From positions 62,001 through 126,000 of the IMG/VR virus record IMGVR_UViG_3300044821_000131: a DNA stretch of 64,000 bases, one strand, 5' to 3'. Made by a program: the position numbers and the translations under genes. This document shows positions 18,939 to 32,524 of the stretch, piece by piece. Positions within the stretch are counted from its first letter, which is position 1, and each line of letters begins with the position of its first letter. The notes under the pieces are model-generated. The model was not told the DNA's origin. It worked only from the letters and a program-made list of their open reading frames with translations, and ran no database searches.

Positions 18939-20609
18939 ATGCCAATCGCTGACAAAATACCGCTCTCGCGACTGCTCGCCTACGGCGCTGGCGGCGTAGG
19001 CCTCGCGGCACTCGAGAACCGCTACATCGGCAACAATCTACCGCCCGAACTCAAAACCGTTAACGGCGTGATCGGCGCCACCACCGGTGCCATGCTGGCC
19101 TCCCATAACCCGGCCATGCAAACCGCCGCCCTCGGCTCCATCCCGTTGAAAGAAATGGCCCTGTTCGGTATCGGTGGTATGGATCGCTTCCGCCGAGCCC
19201 AGCAAGGCTTGGTCGATACCAACCTGCAGACAGCCCGCCTCAATCAAGATACGGCTCGGACTACAGCCAATGACGCAAGCAGCCGTAAAGCCATGGCCCT
19301 GGCCTTTCTGTTGCCAGCCCTAGCCGTCGGTGGCGGCGTGGCAGCCAATTCCTATATGAATTGGAAGAAGCAGCACCACAAGACGAATCCACGATTTCAG
19401 ACCCTAGCGTCCTCCGGTAAACCTCGGTCCAGTCAACGCATTCGATTGGACATTCCGCCGTCGGCATTACCCCGATCATTCTTTCAATCGCTGGGCCGCG
19501 CCACCAACGACCCCCGGGATTATACTCGATTGCAAGGTAAGGACAATGAGATGACCGTGCAGGCCAGTGAGAAGGCCCCCTCGGTAACCATGCCCGAGGT
19601 TGTGAAACAGCTTAAAGACGAACAGAAACATCTACCACTGGTGAAAGGTAAACGCGCGGAGATCCTGAAACAGGCCTACGATAGCGGCCAACGCCCCAGC
19701 CTCGCCCGAACACTCGGCGGACTCGCTTGGGGCGCCACCGGTATCCCAATGGCCCAGAATGCCTGGCGTGAGGCCGGATATGGCCTCAATACCCTCCAGC
19801 AGGGCGATTATCACGACGCCAAGCGCTACGGCATGTCTAGCGCTGCCAACGCCGCATTGGCCCTGATTGCTCTGCGTTTCAACATGCCGTTGGCAGCCAA
19901 GCTGTTTGGTAAGGCACGTATCGGTGGCGTGCTCCGTAACGATATGGCGCGTCAGGGGCTGGCACGATTTAACCCTCTGGGTAAGGGCCAGTGGAGTGAA
20001 TTTCCGACGGCTGCACGCTTCGCCAACAAGTGGGGTCTTGGTCATCAGCTCGGACCGACGCATCTCAGTCCCGACGCGCCGATGCAAGGATTCACTTCGG
20101 CTCCGGGTGGATACATCACGGGCGCTGATCGTATGGCTCGTCGCAGCGCGTTGGGCCTTAATACCCGATCACCAATCAATCGCGCCTTGGATATCCATGG
20201 TGCCTACGATCCACAGCGTTATGCGTGGTCGAACCCGACAACTTCTAATCCTTTATTCCGCAAGCTGTTGTCCACCGGTGATCCGAAGACGTTGCCAGGT
20301 CACGCGATCAATCTGTTGCGCTATGGCGCTAATCGCGGTGTGAATGCCATGTATGCCGGTAAACAGTTTATGAAACGATGGCCAAATCTTACGGGGTCAT
20401 TGGCATTACCGGCCGTAGGCGCCGTGGGTGTTGAGGCGGATCGGTATCAACAGGAGCAAGAACGCGGCAATCAGCCTGGGTTCTTGGATTCGTCACGCAA
20501 TGCACCTTCGGGGAACTACATGCCGGCGAGCACGATGTTCGGTAACATGATCGGAGCTTTTGGTGGTGGTGGTCCAATGCAGCCCCTACGCGCGCAGCTG
20601 GGAGGTTAA
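18939..20609 (+). CDS. Gly/Ala-rich putative virion protein with K-x-A motif
   Basis: 556 aa, G/A-rich hydrophobic helices, internal EILKQAY. Confidence 0.75.
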   Translation: MPIADKIPLSRLLAYGAGGVGLAALENRYIGNNLPPELKTVNGVIGATTGAMLASHNPAMQTAALGSIPLKEMALFGIGGMDRFRRAQQGLVDTNLQTARLNQDTARTTANDASSRKAMALAFLLPALAVGGGVAANSYMNWKKQHHKTNPRFQTLASSGKPRSSQRIRLDIPPSALPRSFFQSLGRATNDPRDYTRLQGKDNEMTVQASEKAPSVTMPEVVKQLKDEQKHLPLVKGKRAEILKQAYDSGQRPSLARTLGGLAWGATGIPMAQNAWREAGYGLNTLQQGDYHDAKRYGMSSAANAALALIALRFNMPLAAKLFGKARIGGVLRNDMARQGLARFNPLGKGQWSEFPTAARFANKWGLGHQLGPTHLSPDAPMQGFTSAPGGYITGADRMARRSALGLNTRSPINRALDIHGAYDPQRYAWSNPTTSNPLFRKLLSTGDPKTLPGHAINLLRYGANRGVNAMYAGKQFMKRWPNLTGSLALPAVGAVGVEADRYQQEQERGNQPGFLDSSRNAPSGNYMPASTMFGNMIGAFGGGGPMQPLRAQLGG

Positions 20610-20615
20610 ACTCTC

Positions 20616-21902
20616 ATGCCAAGCTATGCATTCAAGTGGGATCCTTCGACCGGCACCTTCAGCCTTCCTACCGGTGACCAAGTTGCTGTGCCCGTTGCGC
20701 CGTCGAATCTTGTAGCCTTGGCGGTGTCCACTACAGCTATCGTTCTCACATGGAATCCTTCTCCGACGGCGAACGTAACCTATCTGGTCTATAGGAGTCC
20801 GAATGCCTCGTTCACACCCGGCACGGATACTTTGGTAGCATCTGGATTAAGAACTACGACTTTTACCGATACTGGCCTCGCACCAAGTACAATCTATTAT
20901 TACTACGTGGCGGCAATAGTGGTGGATTACGGCTCGGTTCTATCATTGTTGAGTAATGAGGGTTGGTCGCAAACGGTGTACACAACTACCACCACTACGA
21001 CAACCACTACAACGACAACCACGACAACCACTACTACGACGACCACGCCTACGACGACCACGACGACTACTACGGCTGGTACAACCACTACAACCACCAC
21101 CACTACCACCACCACTACCACCACCACCACTACAACCACCACCACCACCACTACCACGACCACCACGACCACCACGACCACCACCACCACCACCACTACA
21201 ACGACCACCACCACGACCACCACGGCACCGCCAGATCCTATTTTATGGATGAAGGGCGATGTTGGTTTATATAAGGATCTGGGTGTGACTCTGGCTACTG
21301 TGGGTGGGGATGCAATCGAACAATGGAACGACCAAAGCGGCAGCAACAACAACTTGACACAACTCACTCTTGCACACAGACCTTATTATAATATAGCTTC
21401 TGGTAGTCCTTATAATGGAAAGCAGTTCCCAGGTTTCAGTCTGGTACTCGGAAATAATGGCAACTTAACCAAATCCCCATTTATTTTGAATCAGCCGTTC
21501 ACCGTGATGTTTAACGTAGATCTTCCATCGCTCGGCTCGCATTGGTATCCGTTTGGCTCGATTGATAATACAAAGTACATAGCTGTAAGCGGTGCTTACC
21601 AAACTATCACAGTTAATTTCGGAACGCCGTTGATCGCAGCGTCGGTTAATCCGATTGGTGTAATATCGGTTGTAGTAAATGGTGCAAGTTCTAAAATAAG
21701 ACTTAATGGAGTGGATGTCGCTACTGGTAACGTTGGAAGTTTAGGACTTACTGATTTATTGGTGGGAACTACAGACTTCCCGCAAACTTTGGGCACGAAT
21801 CCCTATTTGTTGGAAATGATAGTGCATTCCGTGCGGTCTTCTGACTCCGACATCTCGGCGTTTGAGGCTTACGTGAAATCCAAATGGAACTGGCCGCACT
21901 GA
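20616..21902 (+). CDS. FN3 + poly-Thr linker + LamG/ConA-like domain protein (mucin-like adhesin)
   Basis: FN3: APSNLVA..VSTTAIVLTWNP...YLVYRS...FTDTGLAPSTIYYYYVAA; ~80-residue Thr tract; LWMKGDVG...IEQWNDQSGSNNNLTQ. Confidence 0.85.
   Translation: MPSYAFKWDPSTGTFSLPTGDQVAVPVAPSNLVALAVSTTAIVLTWNPSPTANVTYLVYRSPNASFTPGTDTLVASGLRTTTFTDTGLAPSTIYYYYVAAIVVDYGSVLSLLSNEGWSQTVYTTTTTTTTTTTTTTTTTTTTTTPTTTTTTTTAGTTTTTTTTTTTTTTTTTTTTTTTTTTTTTTTTTTTTTTTTTTTTTTTTAPPDPILWMKGDVGLYKDLGVTLATVGGDAIEQWNDQSGSNNNLTQLTLAHRPYYNIASGSPYNGKQFPGFSLVLGNNGNLTKSPFILNQPFTVMFNVDLPSLGSHWYPFGSIDNTKYIAVSGAYQTITVNFGTPLIAASVNPIGVISVVVNGASSKIRLNGVDVATGNVGSLGLTDLLVGTTDFPQTLGTNPYLLEMIVHSVRSSDSDISAFEAYVKSKWNWPH
20982..21224 (+). repeat. 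poly-threonine coding tract (~81 codons)
   Basis: ACN codons of all four kinds, interrupted only by one Pro and Ala-Gly. Confidence 0.95.
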
Positions 21903-21904
21903 CT

Positions 21905-21933
21905 TTGAAAATTAACCATTGCGCGTTCATAAT
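21905..21933 (+). promoter_or_regulatory. sigma70-like promoter
   Basis: TTGAAA-17-CATAAT upstream of 21954. Confidence 0.45.
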
Positions 21934-21953
21934 TCCCGTGCGAGTCTTTCCTC

Positions 21954-23180
21954 ATGTGTGATCACTCACGATTCGAAATTCATGCCACCGTTGATCGTCA
22001 AGTACACGATCAAAAACTCAAATCCCTAAATCTTAAACTCGCCGTCAAATGCGTCGACTGCGGTCAAGAATTCTATGTGGCCGGCACCGCACCGGACCTG
22101 ATACTTAAAGAAAGAGAACCAGATGGCACAGTCCACACCTACGCCGCCACCCGTACCTTGCCCGTACTCGACGTGGCATCCTCCATCACGCCACTGCCTC
22201 CGCTGAGCATCATCATACCCGTGCTCAACGATAAGGATGAGGCCAATGCAACAATTCGATCAATCCGCGCAACCTCGCCGCCGGATGTGGAAATTATCGT
22301 GGTCGACGATGCCTCAGACAACGTCCTGGTGATCGAGGATAAGTCCGCACGCCTGATTCGATACAAACAACGTATAGGTGCTGGAGCTGCACGCCACGCG
22401 GGGGCATTCGAAGCCAAAGCGCCCTACTTGCTGTTGCTCGACGCGCATATGCGCTTTGATCCCGGGTGGTATGAGCCGGCCATGGCACGTCTTCGTAATA
22501 CTAAACTGAACGTCGTGTGGTGTGCTGCTTGTATGGGCCTTAGCGAGGAAAATATGGAGCTGACGCCACATACGCCGATGTACACTGGTGCTGATCTGAT
22601 CTTCTGGGACCCGATTACCAAGCGGGTGTTCGAAGGCGTGTGGCGTCCGGAGGTTCAACACGCGGACGACTATGAGATTCAGTGTTTGATGGGTGCTTGT
22701 TACTTTATGCGTCGCGATTGGTTCTTTCACATTCATGGTCTTGAGTGGAACAGGAAATGGGGCAGCGAAGAACCTTTTCTCTCGTTGAAGACTTGGCTGG
22801 CCGGCGGAACAGTGCGTCTGATGAAGAGCGTCAAGATCGGCCACAAGTTCCGCAATTCCACCCCGTACTCGACCGAGCTGTCCAGCATACTGTACAATAA
22901 GATCCGGGCGATGAAGGAACTGCTGCCCGACGAGCTGTACCAGTTTCTGCTCGCCAAGATCCCGGATGACAAAAACAAGTTTAGTGCTTTACAGCAAGTG
23001 AAATTCAGCGACGCGGACATCACTGAGGAGCAGGCATACTATAAAAAGATTTTCACACATGATGTGTACTGGTTCTTCGAGAAGTTCGGGATTAAGAATC
23101 CGCTTGACGAAACTAAGCTCGATGGTAATGTAACTTTGAGTGGCGGGTTGGCGCAGCCTGGCAGCGCGCAAGTCTCATAA
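21954..23180 (+). CDS. GT-A glycosyltransferase, polypeptide GalNAc-transferase-like (GT2/GT27)
   Basis: SIIIP, EIIVVDDAS, LLLLDAHMRFDPGW (DxH), and MGACYFMRRDWF...WGSEEPFLSLKTWLAGG...IGHKFR, which parallels the ppGalNAc-T WGGENxELSFRxWxCGG...VGHxFR block. Confidence 0.8.
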   Translation: MCDHSRFEIHATVDRQVHDQKLKSLNLKLAVKCVDCGQEFYVAGTAPDLILKEREPDGTVHTYAATRTLPVLDVASSITPLPPLSIIIPVLNDKDEANATIRSIRATSPPDVEIIVVDDASDNVLVIEDKSARLIRYKQRIGAGAARHAGAFEAKAPYLLLLDAHMRFDPGWYEPAMARLRNTKLNVVWCAACMGLSEENMELTPHTPMYTGADLIFWDPITKRVFEGVWRPEVQHADDYEIQCLMGACYFMRRDWFFHIHGLEWNRKWGSEEPFLSLKTWLAGGTVRLMKSVKIGHKFRNSTPYSTELSSILYNKIRAMKELLPDELYQFLLAKIPDDKNKFSALQQVKFSDADITEEQAYYKKIFTHDVYWFFEKFGIKNPLDETKLDGNVTLSGGLAQPGSAQVS

Positions 23181-23218
23181 ACTTGAGGTCGTTGGTTCAA
23201 ATCCAACATCCGCTCCCA
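23142..23218 (+). tRNA. tRNA with CAU anticodon (elongator Met or Ile2), CCA encoded
   Basis: Acceptor GGCGGGT/ATCCGCT, D arm GCGC/GCGC, anticodon CAAGT-CTCATAA-ACTTG, T arm GTTGG-TTCAAAT-CCAAC; lacks initiator hallmarks. Confidence 0.9.
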
Positions 23219-23219
23219 A

Positions 23220-23534
23220 TTTGCTGAGTGCTGGACTAGTGGGGTGGCTGCGACGGACATGCCCCTGCGCCGTTTCCATTACGGTGAATTTTACGGCCCG
23301 TCGACGGTAGCTTGGTACAAGCAAGTTATCGCCAGCACCAGCAAACCCTCTGCCATATGCCCCCTCCGTAAAGTCCTATCTGATATCAAGTTATTCCCAA
23401 ATGCCTAGAGCTTATTGTCAGAAATACCTATATGTTCTTCTGACAGCTCATGTTGAAAACACGTATCTGTTTATACAACATACTTGTAGGTTTGTGCGTT
23501 TGCGGATTGGAGTGAAGGACGATACGATCCGCAA
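23220..23534 (+). ncRNA. candidate structured ncRNA downstream of the tRNA
   Basis: Nested closing stem TTGCTGAGTGCTGG/CCAGCACCAGCAA with internal hairpins, plus stems at 23408-23449, 23450-23481 and 23500-23534. Confidence 0.4.
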
Positions 23535-23596
23535 TTTAATTTGACAGTACTTCTAGGCTGTGCGAGGTTGCCGCGTCACTGGTTCCTATTAAAACT

Positions 23597-23818
23597 ATGA
23601 GCAACGCATTCAGAACGGAATTGGCCGCGGCTATCAACAGGCACAGCAAAGAGAATGGCTCCGATACTCCGGACTACATTCTGGCGGAATACCTCGAACA
23701 CTGCCTGTACGTATTCGACCACGCCGTACATGCCCGGGAGATGTGGCGCCGCCCGACCGGCAACGTCTTGGATAACCTAAGTGTTCTTGGTAATCAAAGC
23801 ACATATTCAAATCGATGA
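23597..23818 (+). CDS. small phage hypothetical protein
   Basis: FRTELAAAINRHSKENGSDTPDYILAEYL. Confidence 0.75.
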   Translation: MSNAFRTELAAAINRHSKENGSDTPDYILAEYLEHCLYVFDHAVHAREMWRRPTGNVLDNLSVLGNQSTYSNR

Positions 23819-25143
23819 AACTACTTTCAATCTGTATAACCTCTTGGAATACCCGGCGCATGGTCGCCCGGAAACTGACTGCGATCGAGAGCGAGTTAAA
23901 AGACGTCGATTACGAAATCTTTGTTTACGAGCAAGGATCGGAAGATGATAGCGCCGAAATGTTACGCAATAGCCGGCGGCTTAACCAAAAGATACACGTG
24001 TTCTACGAGACCGAGAACAAAGGTCAGTGTATCTCTCGTAACTCAATGGCGTCAGCAGCCACCGGTGAGTTCATCCTGTTCTTGGATGGTGATATTGACC
24101 TCATCCCCGGCAGCATCAAAGCGATGCTTGATTTTTTACAGCACACCGATCGATCAATCGGAGCTGTGTGCTACGATGTAAAATCCGATACTCCGAATGA
24201 AGCTGACGCCACTAAAGCTGAGAATACAATTCTACTGGAAGATGTGGTGTTGACTCAGAGATTCATGTTCTTTCATTATGCCATGTGGCGCGCGGATACT
24301 GCTCTAAAGCATCCGTTACCTGAATTCGCGCCGTTCAATGGTCCAGGTTGGGGTTGTGAGGAAGATGCGGCACTGCTGTACACGCCGGGCACAACGACGG
24401 CCATTATAAAATATCGAAAGTTCTATCATGCCCGGGACCAGCGTTCCTTCAATTTTCTCGGTCAAGACGCCTTGGCCCGTAGTCGTGCCAAGCGCTGGGC
24501 CTCTCTTGCCTGTTTGAAGCAGTTGGACCCGCAGCAGATTAAAGAGTGCTTCGCCAGTCGTACCAGCCCCAATCTTGGCGGATTGCCAGCACACGTCGAA
24601 TTACCCGTTTCGAGTTTGACCTGCTCCGCAGCAATGTATGCCTTGGCGGAATACATGCCGTTTGATCATTCGGGTATGCCAAGTAAATTGGGACCGATTT
24701 GTATCGAGCATGAACTGGAGGTATTGAAAGTTGACAAATCTTTCGGGGTCAACAAGTCAACCAACAGGTGGATACCGAAGTCATGCAGCCCGATCTGGGT
24801 GTTGGCCAATGAGCCGGTGATCGCTACGAATCCGTCGAAACCGACATGCACCATACTTCGTGATCGATCGGTATGGTCATCATACGATCAGCTGCTCAAC
24901 GACGCGATCCACTGGTCGTTCTTTTATACAGACAATGTGCACATGCTGTTGCTGCTGTCACTGTCTGGAATACCGTGCGGTCTCATCGAGGACGTCAATG
25001 CTCCCGGCCGCAGGTTCGCGGTCCTCGACTACGGACTACTGCCCGACATGAACATCGATCAAGTCTTGGCCTTTAGATCGGTGGTGCAGCAACGTTGCTG
25101 TAGCCAAGTAATCATTCCTTTAACTAAAATGTTATCGATATAA
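23815..25143 (+). CDS. GT2 glycosyltransferase with C-terminal polysaccharide-modifying-like domain
   Basis: LSICITSWN, ENKGQCISRN...ATGEFILFLDGD, GWGCEE; C-terminal FYTDNVHMLLLLSLSGIP. Confidence 0.8.
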   Translation: MKLLSICITSWNTRRMVARKLTAIESELKDVDYEIFVYEQGSEDDSAEMLRNSRRLNQKIHVFYETENKGQCISRNSMASAATGEFILFLDGDIDLIPGSIKAMLDFLQHTDRSIGAVCYDVKSDTPNEADATKAENTILLEDVVLTQRFMFFHYAMWRADTALKHPLPEFAPFNGPGWGCEEDAALLYTPGTTTAIIKYRKFYHARDQRSFNFLGQDALARSRAKRWASLACLKQLDPQQIKECFASRTSPNLGGLPAHVELPVSSLTCSAAMYALAEYMPFDHSGMPSKLGPICIEHELEVLKVDKSFGVNKSTNRWIPKSCSPIWVLANEPVIATNPSKPTCTILRDRSVWSSYDQLLNDAIHWSFFYTDNVHMLLLLSLSGIPCGLIEDVNAPGRRFAVLDYGLLPDMNIDQVLAFRSVVQQRCCSQVIIPLTKMLSI

Positions 25144-25150
25144 AATTAAT

Positions 25151-25333
25151 ATGCCTGATAATAATTTCATCACGCCGCCGCCTTGCCAACGCCACAGTTG
25201 GGAGGTAGTGCGTACTGTGGCGCTGCGGTTCCCTTTACCCGGGGGATACTCGAGCAAAGTTTATCGTCCATTTGAGTACCTTCGTTGTCGACTGTGCGGC
25301 GAGGTATCGAGCCGGTGGAAGAAGATCGGATAA
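25151..25333 (+). CDS. small zinc-ribbon protein
   Basis: CQRH...RCRLCG. Confidence 0.5.
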   Translation: MPDNNFITPPPCQRHSWEVVRTVALRFPLPGGYSSKVYRPFEYLRCRLCGEVSSRWKKIG

Positions 25334-25413
25334 TCTATGCCAGACTATTGGCCTATTGTCGTTGTGTTTCTCATCGGCCTATTCTGCGGCCTGTTTAAAA
25401 CTCGACAGAAATT

Positions 25414-26313
25414 ATGAGCACCAAATACTTGTACATCCTATGCAATGCCGGCCTCACCAATCGTATGCACGCCATCGCTGGCGCCCAGCGCCTGGCCGAA
25501 AAGACTGGCCGTGAACTTCGGGTGTGGTGGCCCCTTAATCGGCACCTCAATGCCCCATTCAAGCGATTGTTCACAAATCCATTGAATCTCCTGAAGCAGT
25601 TCGAGTTGGAGCATCTGTTGGAGACCGAAACCCGAGTGAAGTTCTACGATTGCGGTCCGAAGGAGGATGCCAGTTCCGGCGGCTATAATGTGGAGCGCGA
25701 TGATCCGCACGACATCATCGCCATCAAGACGTGGTATGTACCGAAGTTTCGAGGCGAAGGATTTCAGGACGTACTGCCGGAAGTCTTGCCCACCGTACGT
25801 GGTTTTAAACCTGTGCCGGAAGTAGTGGACATGGTGAAAGAAGCTATTAAACGGATCGACGGTTGGTGCAACGATGGCATGCTGTTTGGCGTGCACATTC
25901 GATACGGCGATGTGCGTCAGTATAACCCCAACGAGTGGGACGAAGCGATCATCAAGCGTTATGCCGCTTCGAGCGTCTTTGCATTTAACGTCGCGATCGA
26001 ACGCGTGCTGACACGTTTCCCGGAGGCCAAGTTTTTCTTGGTATCTCCCAATGTGGAAATTGAAAACAGATTTCGTGCTACCTATCTGGATCGGGTGTAT
26101 TCACCACTCAAGAGCACGGAAGGTCGTCTCGGCGTTCGCGGTATGCGCGAGGCCTTGGTCGATCTCCTTCTTCTTGCGCAGACCGATCTGATACTTGGTT
26201 CGGACTTCAGTCAATTCTCGAAGGCCGCGTCCGAGCTTGGTAACGTGCCGCTGGTTCAAGTTGGGAATTGGTGCTGGGAACATAAACTGGATCATTTGCT
26301 GGATAAACTGTAA
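25414..26313 (+). CDS. fucosyltransferase-like GT-B protein (NodZ/FUT/POFUT-like)
   Basis: AGLTNRM, GVHIRYGD, ALVDLLLLAQTDLILGSDFSQFSKAA. Confidence 0.75.
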   Translation: MSTKYLYILCNAGLTNRMHAIAGAQRLAEKTGRELRVWWPLNRHLNAPFKRLFTNPLNLLKQFELEHLLETETRVKFYDCGPKEDASSGGYNVERDDPHDIIAIKTWYVPKFRGEGFQDVLPEVLPTVRGFKPVPEVVDMVKEAIKRIDGWCNDGMLFGVHIRYGDVRQYNPNEWDEAIIKRYAASSVFAFNVAIERVLTRFPEAKFFLVSPNVEIENRFRATYLDRVYSPLKSTEGRLGVRGMREALVDLLLLAQTDLILGSDFSQFSKAASELGNVPLVQVGNWCWEHKLDHLLDKL

Positions 26314-26318
26314 ATATT

Positions 26319-27173
26319 ATGAAAACAGGTTTAATTTGGGTTTCCTACGCCAAAGATGTTTTATGGTTCGCTCTCTCTGCCGCGTCATATAGGAAGTTCG
26401 CGCGTGGTTGGGACATGGCGAAGTGCATCGTCCCCAAACAGGATGAAGAACAATTCAAGCCCCTCTGCGCCAATAACGGTATCGAGTTGGAAGCACTGGA
26501 GGAATGGACGGACAAGCCCTTCAATTGGCACCAGTTCATCAAATCGACCGCGGACCAACACCTGCCTAATGCCGATGTGATCTATCATATCGATTCAGAC
26601 GCCGTGTTCGCCCAGCCATGCACGCCAAAGGACTGGATGGTGGATACCCGCATTCTGATGCCGTACACACCGTATGACGCCTTCCTCAAACGCCCGGAAG
26701 ATGAGGATGAAATGCTTACCTTTATGGGCTATACCGGCAAGAAGGTTGATTTCGATCGGGGTCAGTACAATTGGCGTTTCGCTGTGGAATACGCATTGGG
26801 GCACCGCGTGGAGCGTGAGTGTATGGCTTGGAATCCAATTGTTCACTGGCGCCAGACGTACACGAAGATGCGCGATGTGATGAATACGCGCTGGCCTGGC
26901 CGAGGGTTTGACGGGTATGTGAGATCTTGTCGCGATCAACATCCGCAAACTTTTTGTGAGTTCAACACGTTGGGAGCGATTGCTCACAAATATTTTGACA
27001 GCAGTTATTTCTGGTATGACCTTCATTTCAATGGAAAATATCCTTTCCTTGGGAAGGTAATTCAGTCATGGTCTCACGGCGGCTTGGACCGACCACATGA
27101 CTATGGAGAACAGGTCCAAGACAAATCGATAAACACGCCGCGTAAACTTTTCGAGAGCATCGGCCTATTATGA
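26319..27173 (+). CDS. GT-A fold nucleotide-sugar transferase-like protein
   Basis: YHIDSD (DxD), FCEFNTLG, within a GT cluster. Confidence 0.65.
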   Translation: MKTGLIWVSYAKDVLWFALSAASYRKFARGWDMAKCIVPKQDEEQFKPLCANNGIELEALEEWTDKPFNWHQFIKSTADQHLPNADVIYHIDSDAVFAQPCTPKDWMVDTRILMPYTPYDAFLKRPEDEDEMLTFMGYTGKKVDFDRGQYNWRFAVEYALGHRVERECMAWNPIVHWRQTYTKMRDVMNTRWPGRGFDGYVRSCRDQHPQTFCEFNTLGAIAHKYFDSSYFWYDLHFNGKYPFLGKVIQSWSHGGLDRPHDYGEQVQDKSINTPRKLFESIGLL

Positions 27174-27925
27174 GAGTATGGGTGATGACAGTCTGTCACA
27201 ACGAGGCGAAAATACTTCCGTATTTTCTGGCCCACTACAGTCAATTCGCTGAACGCATTCTGGTGTGGGACGATCAATCCACCGATGACACCCGGAAGAT
27301 ATTGGCCGCCAACCCTTGGACTACTGTGCGGGACTGGCCCTTCGATACTGGAATCGACGACGAGGCGTTCGTCAATTTCGCCCATGCGGCTTATCGCATC
27401 GCGCGCGGACGGGCAGATTGGCTGATCTACGTCGATACCGACGAGTTCATCTATCACCCGAATATCTTGCACTTTCTGACGCACAACACGGAGGGGTTGG
27501 AAGTGATTCAGACCTGCGGATTCAACATGATTGGTACTGGCACCGGCGATGGACTGCCCCCATTCAACGGTCAGCAGATATACGATCGATTTCCGATGGG
27601 CGTCCGTGCGCCGGTGTATTCGAAGCCGGTGGTTATTCGACCTGGTGTCGAGCTGCATTGGTCCCGGGGTAAACATAAGCTTGAACGCTGTGCTGTAAGG
27701 CTGAGCGCCACTCCGTTGTTGAAGCTGTTGCATTATCGGTATATGGGTCACGATTGTACCAAGACTCGAAATGCGAAGAATTACGAGCGTTGCGGACTGG
27801 TCAATGGGGACAAGGCCGCGGCTTGGACGTGTGCACCTGGGCACAGAGGAGAACATTCGGCCGTGTGGGCGGATCGCGTTGTCGGAGAAGCATTCAATGT
27901 ACTAAATTCACCATTATATGTCTAA
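27170..27925 (+). CDS. glycosyltransferase family 2 (Glyco_tranf_2_4-like)
   Basis: VCHNEAKILPYFLAHY, VWDDQSTDDT, YVDTDEF, LLHYRY. Confidence 0.85.
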   Translation: MRVWVMTVCHNEAKILPYFLAHYSQFAERILVWDDQSTDDTRKILAANPWTTVRDWPFDTGIDDEAFVNFAHAAYRIARGRADWLIYVDTDEFIYHPNILHFLTHNTEGLEVIQTCGFNMIGTGTGDGLPPFNGQQIYDRFPMGVRAPVYSKPVVIRPGVELHWSRGKHKLERCAVRLSATPLLKLLHYRYMGHDCTKTRNAKNYERCGLVNGDKAAAWTCAPGHRGEHSAVWADRVVGEAFNVLNSPLYV

Positions 27926-28688
27926 ATCATTTAACGAACTTATTAAGAAGATCCATCTCGGTACTAACCCTTTCGAAGGTTATCCAAAGGATCAATGGCC
28001 CGTCCAACACTGGGGCGGCTGGGGCTCCGATCATCCGTTCTTCGCGGAAATGGTGGCCAAAATTAAACCGCACCTGATCATCGAAGTCGGCAGCTTTCTC
28101 GGCGGTTCCGCCATCCAGCAAGGACAATTGCTGAAGAAGAACGGATTGAACGACTCCGCTGTGCTGTGCGTCGATACGTGGCTTGCTGAACAGATCCTGT
28201 GGTCGTTGCCGGATCAACGTGAGAAGCTCAAACTCCGCTTCGGCCGACCGTGCTTCTATTACACCTTCCTTAGTAACATCATCGATGTCGGCCTGCAGAA
28301 CATGGTGGTGCCGCTGTCTATGCCTAGTTTGAGTGCCGCGCGTTATCTTAAGCAATTGGGAGTCACGGCGCCGATGATCTACATTGACGGATGCCATGAA
28401 GAATTCGATTGTCGTCGGGATCTCGATATGTACTGGGATCTATTGGAGCCAGGTGGTGGAATGATCATTGACGATTACGTCTGCGGCTCTGACATGTTTG
28501 CCGGGCTGGTGCGTGATGTGAATCGATTCGTATACGATACGCATAACGATGCTTTGAACTACGATTGGTTTATACCTCAACACGAGGGCGTGCAGCCGCA
28601 GAGTATAACGGAGGTGCAATTAGCCTTCGGGTTGCGTAGCGACAAGGTGTGGCGGGAAACCAACAAGGTTGTCGTATGGAAAGTTTAA
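27918..28688 (+). CDS. class I SAM-dependent methyltransferase (Methyltransf_24-like)
   Basis: IIEVGSFLGGS, CVDTW, MIYIDGCHE, GGMIIDDY. Confidence 0.85.
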   Translation: MSKSFNELIKKIHLGTNPFEGYPKDQWPVQHWGGWGSDHPFFAEMVAKIKPHLIIEVGSFLGGSAIQQGQLLKKNGLNDSAVLCVDTWLAEQILWSLPDQREKLKLRFGRPCFYYTFLSNIIDVGLQNMVVPLSMPSLSAARYLKQLGVTAPMIYIDGCHEEFDCRRDLDMYWDLLEPGGGMIIDDYVCGSDMFAGLVRDVNRFVYDTHNDALNYDWFIPQHEGVQPQSITEVQLAFGLRSDKVWRETNKVVVWKV

Positions 28689-29005
28689 GTCCCAGTCTTG
28701 TATTCTGTGTCGTGGCGGGAGTCGCCTTGTTTACAGGATTGGGCGACTATCTCTCCAAGAAGTTCTCATTGAACCCAAATTGGCACTTGGCATTTTATGC
28801 TGCTTCGGCGTACTTGGTTGGAGTGCTATTTTGGTTTCGGATGATCTATCATTTTCAAAGTCTGGCCCGCGCTGGTGAGTTGTGGATACTTACGTCGGGC
28901 GTATTGTTACTGGTGATCAGCCAATGTATATTTCACGAGCCCTTGTCGCCGAGGCAATGGGCTGGTGTGGCATTGGGTCTGATCGCGATCGTGTTATTGT
29001 TGTGA
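28676..29005 (+). CDS. small 4-TM DMT/SMR-type transporter
   Basis: Four hydrophobic helices; IFHEPLSPRQWAGVALGLIAIVLL. Confidence 0.75.
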   Translation: MESLSPSLVFCVVAGVALFTGLGDYLSKKFSLNPNWHLAFYAASAYLVGVLFWFRMIYHFQSLARAGELWILTSGVLLLVISQCIFHEPLSPRQWAGVALGLIAIVLLL

Positions 29006-29103
29006 CGGAGAAATTGGCTTGCGAGTTTAATTTTCATTATTCATAATCGGCGGCGTGAATTTTTTACTGGCACAACTTTAATGTCGTATGTTATCTTCAA
29101 TTT

Positions 29104-29691
29104 ATGCAACATTACAACGTCGAGTGGGTCTACTACTTCTTGGGTATTATATTGTCGTTATGTGGTGTGTGGCAATTCTTGTGGAAGCCGCTAAACAAGT
29201 TCGTACGCAACGCTAGCCATATTGGACACAGCCTTAACAGCGCCCTTCCCGTCCTCATAAAAATCGCCGAAGAGTTCAAACCAAACGGCGGCAACTCCCT
29301 CCGCGACGTCGTCAACCGCATCGAAATCAACCAGGCCGTCAGCGATCAGCGCCATCGTGCCATCTACGCCTACTTGGACCTGCCAGTATTCGAAGCTGAT
29401 GCCAAAGGCGCCTACACGTTTGTATCGAAAGATTGGTGTAACGCCGTCAATCTATTTCCAGAACAAGCGTTTGCCGATGGCTGGATCAACTCGGTTCATC
29501 CGGAGGATCGCCAGAAGGTGATGTCCGAATGGAGAAACGCTGTGACCGAGAAGCGTGAATTTGCCTTGGACTACCGCCTTGCCGTTCCTCCCGATCGTGA
29601 AGCTGGTCGCGTCTATGCTCGGGCCTTTCCTGCGAGAGTAACTGCGGAGCGTCCTGTTGTTGGTTATGTCGGTACTCTGAGAAAGTTATGA
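29104..29691 (+). CDS. membrane-anchored PAS-domain protein
   Basis: N-terminal TM helix; PVFEADAKGAYTFVSKDW...GWINSVHPEDRQKV..EW...FALDYRL; no output domain. Confidence 0.8.
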   Translation: MQHYNVEWVYYFLGIILSLCGVWQFLWKPLNKFVRNASHIGHSLNSALPVLIKIAEEFKPNGGNSLRDVVNRIEINQAVSDQRHRAIYAYLDLPVFEADAKGAYTFVSKDWCNAVNLFPEQAFADGWINSVHPEDRQKVMSEWRNAVTEKREFALDYRLAVPPDREAGRVYARAFPARVTAERPVVGYVGTLRKL

Positions 29692-30146
29692 TCGAAGAGA
29701 CGCCCGTCGCCACCTGCATCCCTACAGGCAATCCCAAGAAGACGCGTGCCGGTCTTGGTATGCCTGCCTCGTTGTATCTCCACCAGTTTGGCGAACTTCT
29801 TTTCCATGCTTTCGGTGACTATGCCTATCATGTCGGATCTTCGTTGACCGGCGCAACATGGCGCGATGTGGATATCCGGATTATGCTGGAGGCCGAACAA
29901 TACAAAGCCATGGGTTTCGGTGATCCGCAGCGTCCGCACGAGAATAAACGTTGGTGTGCTTACACGATGGCCTTCTCGGAATTGGGACGTCGCATGACCG
30001 GGCTGCCGATCGATTTTCAAATACAGGAGACTGAGACGGCCAGTACGCAGTACGATTTAGACGAAGGCCACTCGCGTAGTGCTCTGATTTTGTGGGCTCT
30101 TCGAACTGCTCATTCAGAAGTTGCAGCGGACGAGGCAAAACCTTAA
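29688..30146 (+). CDS. minimal pol-beta-superfamily nucleotidyltransferase
   Basis: YHVGSS...WRDVDIRI and distal PIDFQI. Confidence 0.7.
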   Translation: MIEETPVATCIPTGNPKKTRAGLGMPASLYLHQFGELLFHAFGDYAYHVGSSLTGATWRDVDIRIMLEAEQYKAMGFGDPQRPHENKRWCAYTMAFSELGRRMTGLPIDFQIQETETASTQYDLDEGHSRSALILWALRTAHSEVAADEAKP

Positions 30147-30155
30147 TATGCCGGC

Positions 30156-30608
30156 ATGCCTGATCTCATAATCGGTATCTCAGTCCTGCAACCTACTTGG
30201 ATCGATAAGGTCTATCGACTCTGGTTTCAAGCCCAGAAAGCCGACGGCGCAAAAAATCAAGGCTGGATCTTCGCCGTCGATAGCACGTCGGCCAGTACCT
30301 TGACCAAGATGCCCGAATACCCGGATGGCTGTAACTCGATCTGGCACTTCACCAGGCAGGGCGACACACTCAACTGCTCACCTTCGGTGAATTGGATATC
30401 TTGGGGTTTCCACAATGCTGGTAGCTGGACGACGCGCTATGTCGAGATGACCATCGCGGAACAGTCCATGTCGAAAGCGGGCGATGATACCGGCGAAGTC
30501 CCTACACGTTTGCGTATTGGACACACGGTTCATTACGATCTGAATAATGGTGCGGCCGATCCTCAGCAGGTGATCGCCGAGTACCGTCAGAAAGGGGTCC
30601 TGAAGTGA
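30156..30608 (+). CDS. hypothetical protein (DUF6527-like segment)
   Basis: WHFTRQGDTLNCSPSVNW. Confidence 0.6.
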   Translation: MPDLIIGISVLQPTWIDKVYRLWFQAQKADGAKNQGWIFAVDSTSASTLTKMPEYPDGCNSIWHFTRQGDTLNCSPSVNWISWGFHNAGSWTTRYVEMTIAEQSMSKAGDDTGEVPTRLRIGHTVHYDLNNGAADPQQVIAEYRQKGVLK

Positions 30609-32524
30609 ATCGGGCAGCACTCAGAGATGGACAATTCGCTGAGGTGCCCGATAAGGACATCGACTTTGAATTCACCTCTCCCAATCAATTTCTCGGCACC
30701 CATGCCAACTTGATCCCATTGCAGTCCGCAGTACAAGGTGGACGCCTGTTCTACGGCGCTCGATTCGCCAATCAGGCGTTGCCGATCAATAACTCGGAGG
30801 CCCCACTCGTACAGCTAAAGTCAGACGATGATCCGCAAGGCCGATCCTTCGACGAAATCCTCGGCGCCTCGGCTGGCGCCGTACACGCCAAACATGCCGG
30901 TACTGTACATGCTGTTACGCCAGACCATGTTATCGTTAAAACCAAGGATGGAGAAAAAGTGACACACGGATTGTACAACGAATTTCCGTATAACAGAAAG
31001 ACGAAGATCCACAACACTCCGGCGATTAAACCCGGGGATACTGTGGTCCCCGGACAGCTCCTCGCTCATTCCAATTTTACGGACAAGCACGGCACTCTGG
31101 CGCTAGGACTCAATGCTCGCGTCGGACTCGTGCCGTATCTTGGTCGCTCCATGGACGACGCGATTGTGATCAGTGAATCCTTTGCTAAACGTCTGGCCAG
31201 CAACCATGCCTACGGCTACGATCTCGACTACAAGCGTGGTGTGAAGGGCGGCAAAGCGCATCATGTCGGGCTGTTTCCCAACAAGTTCATTAATGACCAG
31301 TTAGATAAGCTGGACGATGAGGGGATCGTGAAGCCGGGACAGATTGTTAATCCTGGTGATCCGATCATCTTGGCCACGCGGCCACGCGTTGTGTCCTCAG
31401 CTTCGGCGCAGTTGGGTCTTCTGTCCAAACATATGAAGAACGCGCGCACGGATGCTTCCGTTCTATGGGAGCACGAAACTCCCGGGCGTGTGGTGGATGT
31501 CCACCGCGGTCGTGGTGGGGTGAAATTGAATATCCATACGGATGTGCCTACGCAGGTGGGCGATAAGCTCGCATTCAGAAGCGGAGGCAAGGCGGTTATA
31601 TCCACCATCCTACCAGACGAACACGTACCGCGCACGGCAGATGGCCAGCCATTGGAGGTTCTGCTAAATCCTCAGAGCATACCATCCCGGGTCAATCCGT
31701 CCTTGGTCTATGAGCTCCTGCTCGGCAAGGTCGCAAAGAAAACCGGACGCCCCTACAAACTGCCAGCCTTTACCAAGAACGGCGAAGCCTGGCACAATGT
31801 CGTCAAAAAAGAACTGGATGATAACGGCCTCACCGATACCGAAGACGTCTTTGACCCCCTCCTGAATAAAAAACTCGAGAACCCCATCACCGTCGGTAAT
31901 GGCTATGTCCTGAAATTACACCACACATCCGCCAGCAAGATAAGTGCTAGAGGTCAAGGTAGTTACAGCTCAGATCAGGAGCCGCTTCATGGTGGTGGTG
32001 AGGGTGGGCAGGGCAAGCGGTTATCGGGACTCGAGTCGGGTGCGTTATTGTCATCTGGGGCGTACGGGGTATTACGGGATGGTGCTACGGTACGTGGGAC
32101 ACGCAACGATCAATTTTGGCGGCAGTTACGTGCGGGGCAGGATCCGGCTGAGCCTGGCAGTTCGTTTGCGTGGGAGAAGTTCCGTGCTTTGTTACAGGGG
32201 TCTGGTTATCAGGCGCGCAAGCTCGGGGCTGGTCGGGAGCGTTTAGGTTTTTGGACGGACAAGGATTTAGCGGAGCGCAAGCCGATCAAGGTGAAGACCG
32301 GGGATATTGTGGATTTGAATTCCCTAGACCCAGTTCGAGGTGGGCTATTTGATCCGGCCCTGACGGGCAATCAGAGCTGGGGTTCGATCGATCTACCCAC
32401 CGCGTTACCAAACCCGGCGGCCGAGGATGTGATTTGCAAGATGTTGGGGCTTACGAATGCGCAGTATCGAAGGATACTGGCTGGAGAAGAGTCTTTACCC
32501 GAGCATTTGCTTCATCCACAATAG
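30605..32524 (+). CDS. rpoB: phage RNA polymerase: beta C-terminal half fused to a beta' N-terminal segment
   Basis: NLIPLQ...RFANQALP, LALGLNARVG..Y.G..MDDAIVISE, GDKLAFRSGGKAVIS.I...P...DG.P.EVLLNP..IPSRVN, YVLKLHH..KISAR; then beta'-like GGLFDP..TG...WGSIDLP. Confidence 0.9.
   Translation: MNRAALRDGQFAEVPDKDIDFEFTSPNQFLGTHANLIPLQSAVQGGRLFYGARFANQALPINNSEAPLVQLKSDDDPQGRSFDEILGASAGAVHAKHAGTVHAVTPDHVIVKTKDGEKVTHGLYNEFPYNRKTKIHNTPAIKPGDTVVPGQLLAHSNFTDKHGTLALGLNARVGLVPYLGRSMDDAIVISESFAKRLASNHAYGYDLDYKRGVKGGKAHHVGLFPNKFINDQLDKLDDEGIVKPGQIVNPGDPIILATRPRVVSSASAQLGLLSKHMKNARTDASVLWEHETPGRVVDVHRGRGGVKLNIHTDVPTQVGDKLAFRSGGKAVISTILPDEHVPRTADGQPLEVLLNPQSIPSRVNPSLVYELLLGKVAKKTGRPYKLPAFTKNGEAWHNVVKKELDDNGLTDTEDVFDPLLNKKLENPITVGNGYVLKLHHTSASKISARGQGSYSSDQEPLHGGGEGGQGKRLSGLESGALLSSGAYGVLRDGATVRGTRNDQFWRQLRAGQDPAEPGSSFAWEKFRALLQGSGYQARKLGAGRERLGFWTDKDLAERKPIKVKTGDIVDLNSLDPVRGGLFDPALTGNQSWGSIDLPTALPNPAAEDVICKMLGLTNAQYRRILAGEESLPEHLLHPQ

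Follow-up and report, generated by a model that had tools for sequence, protein, structure and literature searches.

A GT27-like phage glycosyltransferase paired with poly-threonine tracts: a probable mucin-type O-glycosylation module

Why would a phage encode a protein with a run of almost pure threonine immediately upstream of a cluster of glycosyltransferase (GT) genes? The locus lies in a 64,000-nucleotide stretch (the window) of the 204,257-bp genome of a jumbo phage that encodes its own RNA polymerase and comes from peat and soil metagenomes. An earlier note, made from the letters alone, read it as a possible mucin-type O-glycosylation system working in the cytoplasm, and all the open reading frames it described are present on the + strand. 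Judged from sequence and predicted structure, a cytoplasmic, phage-encoded, mucin-type protein O-glycosylation module with a probable virion surface protein as acceptor is a fairly probable reading. The candidate acceptor is organised as follows.

20616..21902, + strand: candidate substrate protein, 428 aa, with FN3-like domain, poly-Thr stalk and ConA/LamG-like jelly-roll
20616..20981, + strand: N-terminal FN3-like domain, aa 1-122 (PHROG matches and ESM Atlas features)
20982..21224, + strand: poly-Thr tract, aa 123-203, proposed O-glycosylation acceptor (codon counts)
21228..21899, + strand: C-terminal ConA-like/Laminin_G_3-type jelly-roll, aa 205-428 (homologues, AF2, Foldseek)

The FN3, poly-Thr and LamG architecture proposed earlier was upheld by PHROG, ESM Atlas, PF13385, Foldseek and PDB matches. 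PHROG relates the protein to virion structural protein, the FN3 region of tail fibre J and major tail protein; the FN3-like domain matches phrog_31 (central tail fibre J, FN3 region) at E 1.5e-5 and phrog_4971 at E 4.4e-3, and its ESM Atlas features are those of viral fn3 families (score 0.88-0.94). A Pfam search gave zero matches for this domain at E<=0.1, and the support for FN3 is therefore graded moderate. The jelly-roll domain has 2,207 remote homologues, with PF13385 matched by 17 of 50 aligned, and an AF2 model at pLDDT 88, which Foldseek places with phage ConA-like lectin and minor tail proteins (TM 0.70-0.77). Its PDB matches are lectin-like jelly-rolls, the tailspike of cyanopodophage Pan3 among them. 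Since FN3 and ConA-like lectin folds are typical of phage fibres and minor tail proteins, the carrier has the character of a surface protein, and its domain content makes a virion surface fibre or decoration the most likely role.

The tract itself comprises 78 Thr, 1 Pro, 1 Ala and 1 Gly in 81 residues, with Thr encoded by ACC (39), ACG (17), ACT (13) and ACA (9), in agreement with the earlier estimate of about 80 threonines using all four ACN codons. Tandem Repeats Finder detected imperfect nucleotide repeats matching at 76-78% only, so the tract is no clean recent slippage array. Unitigs of the source run are interrupted exactly at 20982-21230, that is, at the tract, so its exact length and in-frame continuity depend on the IMG assembly; continuity is supported by relatives, in which domain, tract and domain lie within single ORFs. 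This is the sole ORF with a Thr-rich tract in the whole genome, which leaves a single candidate acceptor (one Thr tract in this genome) beside the sole PF00535 cluster. The gene that follows encodes the proposed initiating enzyme.

21954..23180, + strand: GT27-like (ppGalNAc-T-like) soluble glycosyltransferase, 408 aa, proposed initiating enzyme (Pfam, phmmer, profile, Foldseek)
21954..22178, + strand: N-terminal extension of this enzyme, ~75 aa, beta-rich, Cys/His-containing (C2, H4, C33, C36; sequence and model)
22440..22448, + strand: DxH motif, D163-A-H165 (DAH, aa 163-165), Mn2+/UDP-binding (alignment)
22758..22853, + strand: Gal/GalNAc-T motif region, WGSEEPFLSLKTWLAGG (aa 269-285) ... 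GHKFR (aa 296-300) (alignment)
23142..23218, + strand: tRNA-Met (CAT), overlapping the final 39 nt of the GT ORF (ARAGORN; overlooked in the earlier note)

The earlier note had left the choice between GT27 and GT2 to database placement, and the top PDB matches are all GT27 ppGalNAc-Ts rather than ordinary GT2 enzymes. The ORF matches PF00535 at E 8.6e-22, and with phmmer against the PDB its best 16 matches are all ppGalNAc-Ts, with a top E of 1.8e-21 over aa 78-341. The GT family profile matched GT27 alone over its full length (E 3.6e-33 to 1e-21), whereas ordinary GT2 structures were matched over the first ~100 positions only, at E >= 3e-13. The core of the AF2 model has a pLDDT of ~97, and the best 50 Foldseek matches of the model are all ppGalNAc-Ts (E ~1e-20). 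The DAH, WGSEEPFLSLKTWLAGG and GHKFR motifs pointed out earlier were all found in the ORF. DAH aligns with DSH of GalNAc-T10, and its D and H are invariant among 55 GT family members; the WGSEEPFLSLKTWLAGG ... GHKFR region aligns with WGGEQYEISFKVWMCGG...VGHIYR of GalNAc-T10, by which His297 corresponds to the conserved third Mn2+-ligand His. Across the same 55 members G270, E273 (WGxE motif), G284, G296 and H297 are invariant, and W269 is kept in at least 90%. The N-terminal extension forms beta strands in the model at pLDDT 50-74 and does not occur in the ~300-aa homologues, whose alignments cover about 75% of the query. These data show a GT-A enzyme whose modelled fold and catalytic motifs are of GT27 type.

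Eukaryotic ppGalNAc-Ts (CAZy GT27) are the initiators of mucin-type O-glycosylation. The phage enzyme shares with them the GT-A domain, DxH, the Gal/GalNAc-T motif (WG[GS]E...W.[CA]GG) and, as the third Mn2+ ligand, the His of GH.FR; its gene is paired with one encoding a homopolymeric Thr stretch, the kind of acceptor that is classical for mucin-type glycosylation. However, it is bacteriophage-encoded, has 20-24% identity to the eukaryotic enzymes, lacks their C-terminal ricin-type lectin domain and N-terminal membrane anchor and stem, and is soluble, presumably in the bacterial cytoplasm instead of the Golgi lumen. No 4-epimerase was found in the phage genome, so GalNAc as donor is not implied.

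The genetic pairing recurs in related phages, as the earlier note had anticipated. In all 12 fetched close-clade loci a gene upstream of the GT, on the same strand, encodes a long Thr tract; it directly abuts the GT in 9 and lies 0.8-1.9 kb away in 3. Counting the window and one exception, L020, the tract is present in 13 of 14 loci, all from the GT's own clade (support 95/82); L020, whose record is only ~30% complete, has no Thr tract in the 6 kb upstream. From a background of 5 tract ORFs in 945 kb (~5 per Mb), the chance P is ~0.013 per locus and ~5e-24 for 13/14, a value to be read with the shared descent of close-clade GTs in mind, the 13 loci being not fully independent events. Compared without the tract, the carrier proteins fall into at least 4 groups unrelated by BLASTP, and among the window's cluster and flanking genes the GT alone is common to the related loci, save for a weak methyltransferase match in L008. 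The surroundings range from lambda-like tail modules (L003, L131) to PKD/FG-GAP/SbcC genes (L004, L006, L129), and relatives' GT loci lie among tail, collar, PKD and LamG genes; the carriers in relatives have no recognisable virion annotation. L032 supplies a second, separate association: here the gene for the major head protein is followed by genes for two small proteins whose C-termini are poly-Thr tails, and a GT belonging to a different branch of the family lies 1.7-1.9 kb downstream of these two. The GT and the Thr tract are tightly and repeatedly linked, and their pairing in 13/14 loci despite unrelated carriers suggests phage-made mucin-like glycoproteins inside bacteria. The genes downstream of the GT are listed below.

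23815..25143, + strand: second GT2-family glycosyltransferase, 442 aa, GT-A domain at aa 1-160 with C-terminal ~280 aa beyond (PF00535, E 5.6e-18)
25414..26313, + strand: weakly NodZ-like (GT23-type fucosyltransferase-like) protein, tentative, 299 aa (PF05830, E 3.5e-4, under the curated cut-off)
26319..27173, + strand: DUF6492-like phage-specific protein, possibly of GT-A fold, IDSD (DxD-like) motif (ESM Atlas lead)
27170..27925, + strand: GT-A glycosyltransferase (Glyco_tranf_2_4), 251 aa (PF13704, E 1.3e-16)
27918..28688, + strand: SAM-dependent methyltransferase, CmcI/rhamnosyl-O-methyltransferase-like (PF13578, Methyltransf_24, E 7.3e-13)
28649..29005, + strand: EamA/ArnE-like small membrane protein, ~109-118 aa (PF00892, E 2.8e-8)

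The GT2 and the methyltransferase named in the earlier note are both confirmed. The former has the second domain of chondroitin synthase as best PDB match (E 2.4e-9), and the latter also matches PF04989 (E 3.1e-6) and NF045824 rhamnosyl O-methyltransferase (E 1.7e-4). The fucosyltransferase-like label holds in a weaker form, NodZ being the top PDB match but at E 0.17. As for the two further GT-A enzymes, the assignment stands for 27170-27925, which has weak PDB matches to GmaR (E 0.008), presumably the Listeria flagellin O-GlcNAc transferase, and to 7msk (Glyco_trans_2-like domain protein, E 0.047), and a weak NCBIfam match to the SunS-family peptide S-glycosyltransferase (E 0.0058). It is weak for 26319-27173, for which Pfam, PHROG and PDB sequence searches were all without match; ESM Atlas features point to phage clusters, some of them DUF6492 (score 0.98), and the structure neighbours GT8, GT2 and GT6 are those of the top Atlas match's model, not of the ORF itself. 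A crude hydropathy scan found no TM segment in the GT27-like enzyme, in any other GT of the cluster or in the methyltransferase, and soluble enzymes are consistent with the cytoplasmic modification claimed earlier. The supposed small transporter is an EamA-like membrane protein whose membership in the glycosylation system is uncertain. It has an alternative ATG start at 28676, a weak ArnE match (E 1e-3) and two hydrophobic segments in the crude scan at threshold 1.6, and its sequence can be read as about four TM helices. What it would do in a cytoplasmic pathway is not obvious.

Among the alternatives, the one that survives best, itself unlikely, is that the GT27-like enzyme alone acts on the tract and adds one sugar per Thr, with the downstream GT, methyltransferase and EamA genes serving an unrelated pathway. 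Apart from the L008 match, those genes are absent from related loci, and a tRNA gene and a ~600-nt gap part them from the GT. Against this, every PF00535 match or GT2-type gene of the whole genome falls in this one cluster, and relatives too have extra, different GTs or methyltransferases right after the GT or fused to it: GT2-GT27 fusions occur in L003, L008, L127 and L130, and L008 carries Methyltransf_24, GT25 and GT2 genes. This suggests a variable glycan-extension set as a regular part of the module. Since the window's own downstream genes do not accompany the GT in its relatives, bar that methyltransferase match, we infer their role in the same glycan from adjacency.

Somewhat less likely is that the tract serves, unmodified, as a flexible linker or spacer, with the enzyme glycosylating other sites or proteins, such as capsid or tail subunits in the manner of mycobacteriophages, and the adjacency reflecting a mobile cassette of fibre plus accessory genes instead of an enzyme-substrate pair. 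Many secreted bacterial proteins have Thr/Pro/Ser linkers without dedicated GTs. The wider GT family (about 25-46% identity) occurs in phages without a Thr tract, complete 72-78-kb genomes among them having no run of >=10 Thr codons, so that the family as a whole is not confined to poly-Thr acceptors; its distant members adjoin a virion structural protein gene (phrog_3287), which makes other acceptors possible. However, it is the tract itself that travels with the GT and not a homologous cassette, the methyltransferase match in L008 excepted; the carriers' folded domains and flanking genes all differ. Elsewhere in phage DNA, moreover, Thr tracts are very rare. Tract placement also varies, from internal linkers in some carriers to bare C-terminal tails in L006 and L032, which fits a modification target better than an interdomain spacer.

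It is improbable that the cluster alters the host envelope (O-antigen, EPS, teichoic acid or lipid-linked sugar, in a Gtr/Arn-like manner) for superinfection exclusion or receptor masking, with the Thr-tract protein a mere neighbour. Both GT2-type proteins have 'GtrB-like O-antigen conversion' as best PHROG, over the N-terminal half only (E 2e-5 and 4e-7), the second GT2 has weak ArnC-like matches, and the cluster terminates with the EamA/ArnE-like protein. Yet the crude hydropathy scan found no ORF with >=3 TM-like segments in the genome, hence no polytopic GT-C-type transferase (GtrC/ArnT-like), and the C-terminal TM helices of GtrB/ArnC are missing from every GT of the cluster. The first GT resembles peptide-acting GT27 enzymes along its full length, unlike lipid-acting GT2s, cellular genomes yielded no member of the GT family with the clade's motif patterns, and the repeated linkage to Thr tracts on unrelated proteins would be left unaccounted for.

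DNA modification is common in jumbo phages. That the cluster's GTs put glycans on phage DNA to protect it from restriction, in the way of T-even and other phages, is nevertheless very improbable: multi-GT phage clusters are known to assemble glycans on hydroxymethyl-pyrimidines (Pyle 2024, cited in PMC12619734), but no ThyA-family hydroxymethylase was found in the genome (ThyX only), the nearest relatives of the lead GT are peptide-acting, and the linkage to Thr tracts would go unaccounted for.

The mucin-type reading, by contrast, is supported by the GT27 placement and by the co-occurrence of GT and tract as predicted. In the proposed mechanism, the 428-aa FN3/poly-Thr/ConA-LamG-like protein would be made in the infected cell, and the adjacent soluble GT27-like enzyme would attach the first sugar to Thr-tract hydroxyls from a host-supplied UDP-sugar, with Mn2+ bound by DxH plus His297. 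Extension and capping of these sugars would probably fall to the sugar-O-methyltransferase-like enzyme and the four soluble GT or GT-like proteins encoded downstream. The stalk so formed would be a dense 'bottle-brush', about 20 nm in length if extended, stiff, hydrated and protease-resistant, and would keep the C-terminal lectin-like domain at a distance from the particle. Here the Thr tract is the presumed acceptor, the virion the presumed location of its carrier, and the identity of any sugar is putative.

In Gram-positive serine-rich repeat adhesins, GtfA/GtfB and accessory GTs are encoded beside the SRRP gene; cytoplasmic O-glycosylation of the long Ser/Thr-rich tract is followed by extension of the glycan by variable further GTs, and the protein forms a surface fibre displaying a binding domain. 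The proposed phage module resembles this arrangement in its initiating GT beside the substrate and its variable extending GTs. It differs in that the SRRP initiator is a GT-B (GT4) GlcNAc-transferase complex and not a GT27-like GT-A enzyme, that SRRPs are exported via the accessory Sec system whereas the phage substrate is presumably assembled onto the virion, and that the phage tract is almost pure Thr. Mycobacteriophage virions (Che8, Corndog, Myrna) are glycosylated by phage GTs, and the glycans are added in the cytoplasm to C-terminal extensions of structural subunits (Freeman 2023, cited and summarised in PMC11256854, PMC12363180 and PMC12619734). The poly-Thr C-terminal tails in L032, encoded beside the capsid gene, are comparable. 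Unlike in the mycobacteriophages, where the acceptor is a capsid or tail-tube C-terminus, the acceptor here would be a homopolymeric run of Thr, long and set within a fibre-like FN3/lectin protein; host and environment differ as well, and neither the window GT nor its family has a match among 50,697 GenBank phage records, assumed to include Che8, Corndog and Myrna. Secreted glycoside hydrolases with Pro/Thr/Ser linkers and streptococcal IDRs rich in Ser/Thr offer a further comparison (PMC12041528). Like the phage tract, these segments are low-complexity Thr/Ser/Pro linkers between folded domains; they are O-glycosylated, and the sugars give extension and protease protection. Their modification takes place outside the cytoplasm, where membrane-bound GT-C or Pgf-type machinery draws on lipid-linked sugars, whereas the phage enzymes are all soluble.

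No earlier description of a phage GT27-like/poly-Thr pair was found in the literature. If the proposed reading is true, phages would build their own mucin-like glycoproteins within bacteria.

The two genes at the centre of this analysis lie side by side in the window:

20616-21902, + strand: Thr protein, 428 aa
21954-23180, + strand: GT27-like glycosyltransferase (the GT), 408 aa, matched by Pfam Glycos_transf_2, a model that we take to cover GT27 catalytic domains as well

All the ORFs named in the earlier note are present, and its proposal that the second gene encodes an enzyme like the polypeptide GalNAc-transferases (ppGalNAc-Ts, CAZy GT27), rather than a general GT2, agrees with the best sequence, profile and fold matches, all of which are ppGalNAc-Ts. 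When the GT was compared with all PDB sequences, the best 16 matches were ppGalNAc-Ts (best E 1.8e-21, aa 78-341), and the next were generic GT2 enzymes at E > 1e-4. A 51-sequence family profile aligned GT27 enzymes over the full length of the profile (E 3.6e-33 to 1e-21); chondroitin/heparosan synthases and other GT2s were aligned over the first ~100 positions only, the nucleotide-binding half. The AlphaFold model has a core pLDDT of ~97, and its top 50 Foldseek matches in the PDB are all ppGalNAc-Ts from human, fly and Toxoplasma, over ~325 columns at E ~1e-20. D163 and H165 (DxH), G270 and E273 (WGxE motif) and H297 (GHKFR) are invariant among 55 homologues. D163, H165 and H297 align with their equivalents in GalNAc-T10, placing the DxH and the distal Mn2+-coordinating His of GT27 in the GT. 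The Gal/GalNAc-T motif of GT27 (WGGE...W.CGG) is present as WGSEEPFLSLKTWLAGG, with G270, E273 and G284 invariant and W269 and G285 kept in at least 90% of the 55 homologues.

No C-terminal ricin B-type lectin domain of the GT27 kind was matched in the GT, which continues for ~70 aa beyond its catalytic core as helices plus a disordered tail. A hydropathy scan found no TM-like segment in it, a departure from the type II membrane topology of GT27. Because both the lectin domain and the membrane anchor are missing, this phage-encoded enzyme is named GT27-like and not a canonical GT27 member. An N-terminal extension of ~75 aa (21954-22178), absent from the ~300-aa homologues, is beta-rich and carries C2, H4, C33 and C36. 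It is pure speculation that this extension might be zinc-ribbon-like and replace the lost lectin domain in substrate recruitment.

On viral contigs, a single-protein scan gave one weak locus, and an alignment-based scan was required. The GT's family comprises 141 metagenomic matches at E < 1e-5, mostly ~300-aa cores, some of them fused behind a second GT2 domain. Searches of the GT core by tblastn against 50,697 GenBank phage genomes gave no match even at E 1e-3, and megablast of the 8.4-kb region against GenBank phages gave none. Using the motif-restricted alignment A3, whose scope is the close clade (the window GT's own) and not the wider family, no relative with the close-clade motifs was found in 185,579 species genomes.

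The Thr protein has the architecture proposed earlier, FN3, poly-Thr and LamG, each part of which was recovered. Its N-terminus is FN3-like, with a match to phrog_31 (tail-fibre-J FN3 region, E 1.5e-5) and fn3 leads in the ESM Atlas. For the C-terminal 224 aa, a word-based homologue search found none, and an exhaustive HMMER search returned ~2,200 remote relatives. The Thr protein sequence itself has no direct Pfam match, and Laminin_G_3 (PF13385) is matched by 17 of 50 aligned homologues of the C-terminal domain. The domain model (pLDDT 88) is a ConA-like jelly-roll, all-beta with a C-terminal helix. Its Foldseek matches include phage 'ConA-like lectin' and 'minor tail' proteins at TM 0.70-0.77, and its PDB matches are lectin-like jelly-rolls, one of them a cyanopodophage tailspike. 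By jelly-roll fold and PF13385 homology, the domain belongs to the Concanavalin A-like lectin/glucanase superfamily (Laminin_G_3). Foldseek also returned clostridial neurotoxin binding domains. This toxin-like reading was rejected, as identity is 10-14%, the match is to a generic lectin-like jelly-roll subdomain only, and the phage ConA-like proteins are far better matches. The FN3-like and ConA-like folds, together with weak PHROG structural matches, suggest that the Thr protein is carried on the virion.

Between these two domains, aa 123-203 (nt 20982-21224) form a tract in which 78 of the 81 residues are Thr. Each of the four ACN codons occurs in it (ACC 39, ACG 17, ACT 13, ACA 9), and at the nucleotide level the repeat is an imperfect one (76-78%); it is therefore the protein sequence that is maintained, and recent slippage does not account for the tract. 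The virus record, 204,257 bp with direct terminal repeats, estimated complete and represented in the window by bases 62001-126000, contains no other Thr- or Ser/Thr-rich tract. Logan unitigs of the source run stop at 20981 and restart at 21231, short-read assembly leaving the tract unbridged, and the length given here is that of the IMG assembly (unitigs break at 20982-21230). Such a break also accounts for P0121, a public 217-aa protein that corresponds to the C-terminal domain, its start having been assigned to an internal Met on a contig broken at the tract.

The genomic contexts of 12 close relatives of the GT (46-56% identity; loci L003, L004, L006, L008, L009, L127-L131, L136 and L137) were obtained from ENA, JGI, Logan and IMG/VR. 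In all 12, an upstream gene on the strand of the GT encodes a long Thr-rich tract of 13-114 residues, in which some S, P or G is interspersed among the T and the codons are mixed. The tract gene abuts the GT directly in 9 of the 12 (overlap to 25-nt gap) and lies 0.8-1.9 kb upstream in the other 3. In a maximum-likelihood tree, which leaves out the later-fetched L136 and L137, these GTs group in a single clade with support of 95/82; of its 12 rows, 11 are tract-linked, and the sole exception is L020, whose record is ~30% complete. As a control, 2 tract ORFs were found in 580 kb around 80 generic GT2 genes, loci from a metagenome-contig scan dominated by generic GT2 N-terminal motifs that served as control set only. 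Another 3 were found in 365 kb around distant family members. The co-occurrence of Thr tract and GT across phages, put forward earlier as a check, holds in 13 of 14 close-clade loci (the window and the 12 relatives, against L020), with P ~5e-24 for a background of ~0.013 per 2.5 kb, or P ~4e-10 when five independent groups alone are counted.

The proteins bearing these tracts are not of one kind. BLASTP with the tracts masked placed the carriers in at least four unrelated groups, among them the window protein, L130, L004/L008/L009/L006 with L129 and L128, and L003/L131; the L136 and L137 carriers appear different again. When each window gene in 18261-30608 was compared by tblastn with 47 related loci, the GT alone was common, apart from one weak methyltransferase match. 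The phage backgrounds are also unlike, comprising the jumbo RNAP phage of the window, lambda-like tail modules and PKD/FG-GAP/SbcC contexts. Given unrelated carriers and no common neighbours, the GT moves with a Thr tract and not with one protein or cassette. As read from gene order, this is the pattern that would be expected of an enzyme and its acceptor, and it makes polypeptide Thr the putative acceptor by indirect evidence, that of gene linkage. If instead the tract were an unmodified linker and the GT27-like enzyme acted on other sites or proteins, it would be unexplained why an otherwise very rare feature tracks the GT across unrelated proteins, and we consider this reading improbable.

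Glycosylation of the Thr tract need not apply to the whole family. Distant members (~25-46% identity) occur in smaller phages with a virion structural protein gene (phrog_3287) adjoining. No Thr tract was found near their GT, and three complete 72-78 kb genomes with distant members hold no run of at least 10 Thr codons. The family is therefore able to use other acceptors, and the poly-Thr specialisation is clade-specific. In L012, L023, L024, L028 and L038, a conserved 'virion structural protein' of ~590-660 aa (phrog_3287, E ~1e-22) lies directly 3' of the GT and is a candidate alternative acceptor in this tract-free clade. Outside the close clade, L032, from another branch of the family, has two small genes whose products end in bare poly-Thr tails of ~22 and ~30 residues (L032:2624-4305). 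These genes come immediately 3' of the one for the major head protein (phrog_1357, E 1.6e-53), and the GT lies 1.7-1.9 kb downstream of them. Their products may be glycosylated head-decoration proteins.

Downstream of the GT, the window carries the remainder of the cluster, with five enzyme genes 3' of a tRNA gene:

23142-23218, + strand: tRNA-Met (anticodon CAT), overlapping the last 39 nt of the GT ORF
Cluster gene 1: second GT2 (PF00535, E 5.6e-18)
Cluster gene 2: weakly NodZ-like protein, below the Pfam cut-off
Cluster gene 3: DUF6492-like, possibly GT-A protein (Atlas lead only)
Cluster gene 4: Glyco_tranf_2_4 GT, with weak best PDB matches to GmaR and 7msk (Glyco_trans_2-like domain protein)
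Cluster gene 5: CmcI/rhamnosyl-O-methyltransferase-like enzyme
28649-29005, + strand: small EamA/ArnE-like membrane protein, ending an otherwise fully soluble enzyme cluster

The tRNA is followed by a ~600-nt gap with a single 73-aa ORF (23597-23818) before the next GT, and the depth spike seen at the tRNA in each of the two runs is due to short tRNA-like contigs that belong to other organisms. The Glyco_tranf_2_4 GT also has a weak NCBIfam match to the SunS family of peptide S-glycosyltransferases; GmaR is, we assume, the Listeria flagellin O-GlcNAc transferase. All PF00535 matches in the genome lie within the GT cluster. As no NAD-dependent sugar epimerase/dehydratase was found in the phage genome, the donors are taken to be host nucleotide sugars, and GalNAc is not to be assumed.

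Conservation does not extend to the window's downstream genes; the relatives bear their own, different extra GTs and methyltransferases, adjoining or fused to the GT. Judged from gene content, this suggests that a variable glycan-extension set accompanies the GT. Several relatives encode a two-domain protein of 540-690 aa, in which another GT2 forms the N-terminal half and the GT27-like domain the C-terminal half:

L003:10001-11932, GT2-GT27-like fusion
L008:10001-12082, GT2-GT27-like fusion
L127:1179-2885, GT2-GT27-like fusion
L130:6001-7617, GT2-GT27-like fusion

Such a fusion would be an initiator-plus-extender enzyme. At L008, a second Thr/Ser-tract protein (L008:14031-15716, 561 aa, tract at aa ~39-77) is encoded just downstream of the locus's GT, methyltransferase, GT25 and GT2 genes, and a single module may serve two substrates there.

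We regard a Gtr/Arn-like, lipid-linked modification of the envelope by this cluster as quite unlikely. Systems of the GtrABC/Arn type require a TM-anchored polyprenyl-phosphate GT2, a small flippase and a polytopic GT-C, and of these only the small EamA/ArnE-like protein is present. By a crude hydropathy scan, the GTs of the window, its GT2s included, are all soluble and free of TM segments; genome-wide, the scan found no ORF with at least three TM-like segments. Glycosylation of phage DNA by these GTs is hardly credible, as it requires a hydroxymethyl-pyrimidine pathway to supply the acceptor, with a hydroxymethylase of the ThyA family, and that family (PF00303) is absent from the complete genome, which has ThyX.

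The phage that carries this cluster encodes multisubunit RNA polymerase beta/beta' pieces in three genes and is therefore a jumbo phage with its own RNAP; its + strand holds all the large genes. Its DNA comes from a peat metagenome, and a rhizosphere metagenome holds near-identical fragments at low depth. The relevant features are as follows:

18197-18228, + strand: strong hairpin with a 13-bp stem and then a T-run, just 5' of gene 18261-18938
30605-32524, + strand: split RNA polymerase beta/beta'-like gene
43718-45766, + strand: split RNA polymerase beta/beta'-like gene
55096-56940, + strand: split RNA polymerase beta/beta'-like gene (phrog_24349 and phrog_25354 across the three, E 1e-45 to 1e-53)

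The 43718-45766 product has an additional N-terminal HAD/polynucleotide-kinase-phosphatase-like region (phrog_1238, phrog_415), an unusual fusion. A sigma-70 promoter/terminator scan gave counts no higher than shuffles and, the hairpin aside, is not informative where a phage brings its own RNAP. Two unannotated genes, of 225 aa (hydrophobic N-terminus) and 556 aa, lie upstream of the Thr protein. Since no terminator of comparable strength was found between the hairpin and the GT cluster, the Thr protein, the GT and these two genes may form one transcription unit. Further upstream, 16902-17693 (+ strand) encodes a 263-aa protein made up mostly of ~25 tandem hexapeptide units (xIGNxV-type, e.g. 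GNDVTIGD/GNRVTIGN), followed by a globular C-terminal ~70 aa. The repeats are suggestive of a left-handed beta-helix and also yield a long spurious antisense ORF (16959-17462).

For the poly-Thr pair, we infer a mechanism whose steps go beyond what sequence, fold and gene linkage show. The Thr protein would be made in the cytoplasm, where the GT27-like enzyme would initiate O-glycosylation along the tract in a Mn2+- and UDP-sugar-dependent reaction. The neighbouring GTs would lengthen the glycan and the methyltransferase would cap it. The product would be a stiff, extended stalk of ~20 nm at 0.25 nm per residue, held by its FN3-like end and displaying the lectin-like domain on the virion surface.

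GT27-initiated mucin-type O-glycosylation is a process of the eukaryotic Golgi and is usually viewed as a eukaryotic invention, and in bacteria Ser/Thr-rich adhesins are glycosylated in the cytoplasm by GTs encoded alongside them. Unlike eukaryotic GT27 enzymes, the window GT is soluble, minimal (~300 aa core) and lectin-free. In full-text literature searches, neither GT27-like enzymes from phages nor the pairing of poly-Thr with a GT was found described. Virion glycosylation is already known from mycobacteriophages, according to the passages on Freeman 2023 in PMC11256854, PMC12363180 and PMC12619734. The window GTs are phage-encoded; tblastn gave no homologue of the GT in the GenBank phage genomes, among which Che8 and Corndog are assumed to be. 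It is possible, though on balance doubtful, that tailed phages hold a widespread, hitherto unrecognised GT27-type lineage whose enzymes make true mucin-like glycoproteins, poly-Thr stalks with dense O-glycans, in bacterial cytoplasm for mounting on virions. Such a lineage would be the prokaryotic-virus counterpart of the mucin-type initiator, and perhaps its relative by descent or its source.

The pairing of GT and Thr protein can be tested directly with two cloned genes. If true, mucin-type chemistry would work in the bacterial cytoplasm with a soluble, lectin-free GT27-like enzyme and its own poly-Thr substrate, a compact pair for producing mucin-like glycoproteins in bacteria, and the question of GT27 origin is raised. 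Virion glycosylation would then be a trait of environmental jumbo phages and siphophages as well as of mycobacteriophages, and the stalk would represent a novel type of appendage on the virion, which might serve in adsorption or matrix adherence, or in protection from proteases or antibodies.
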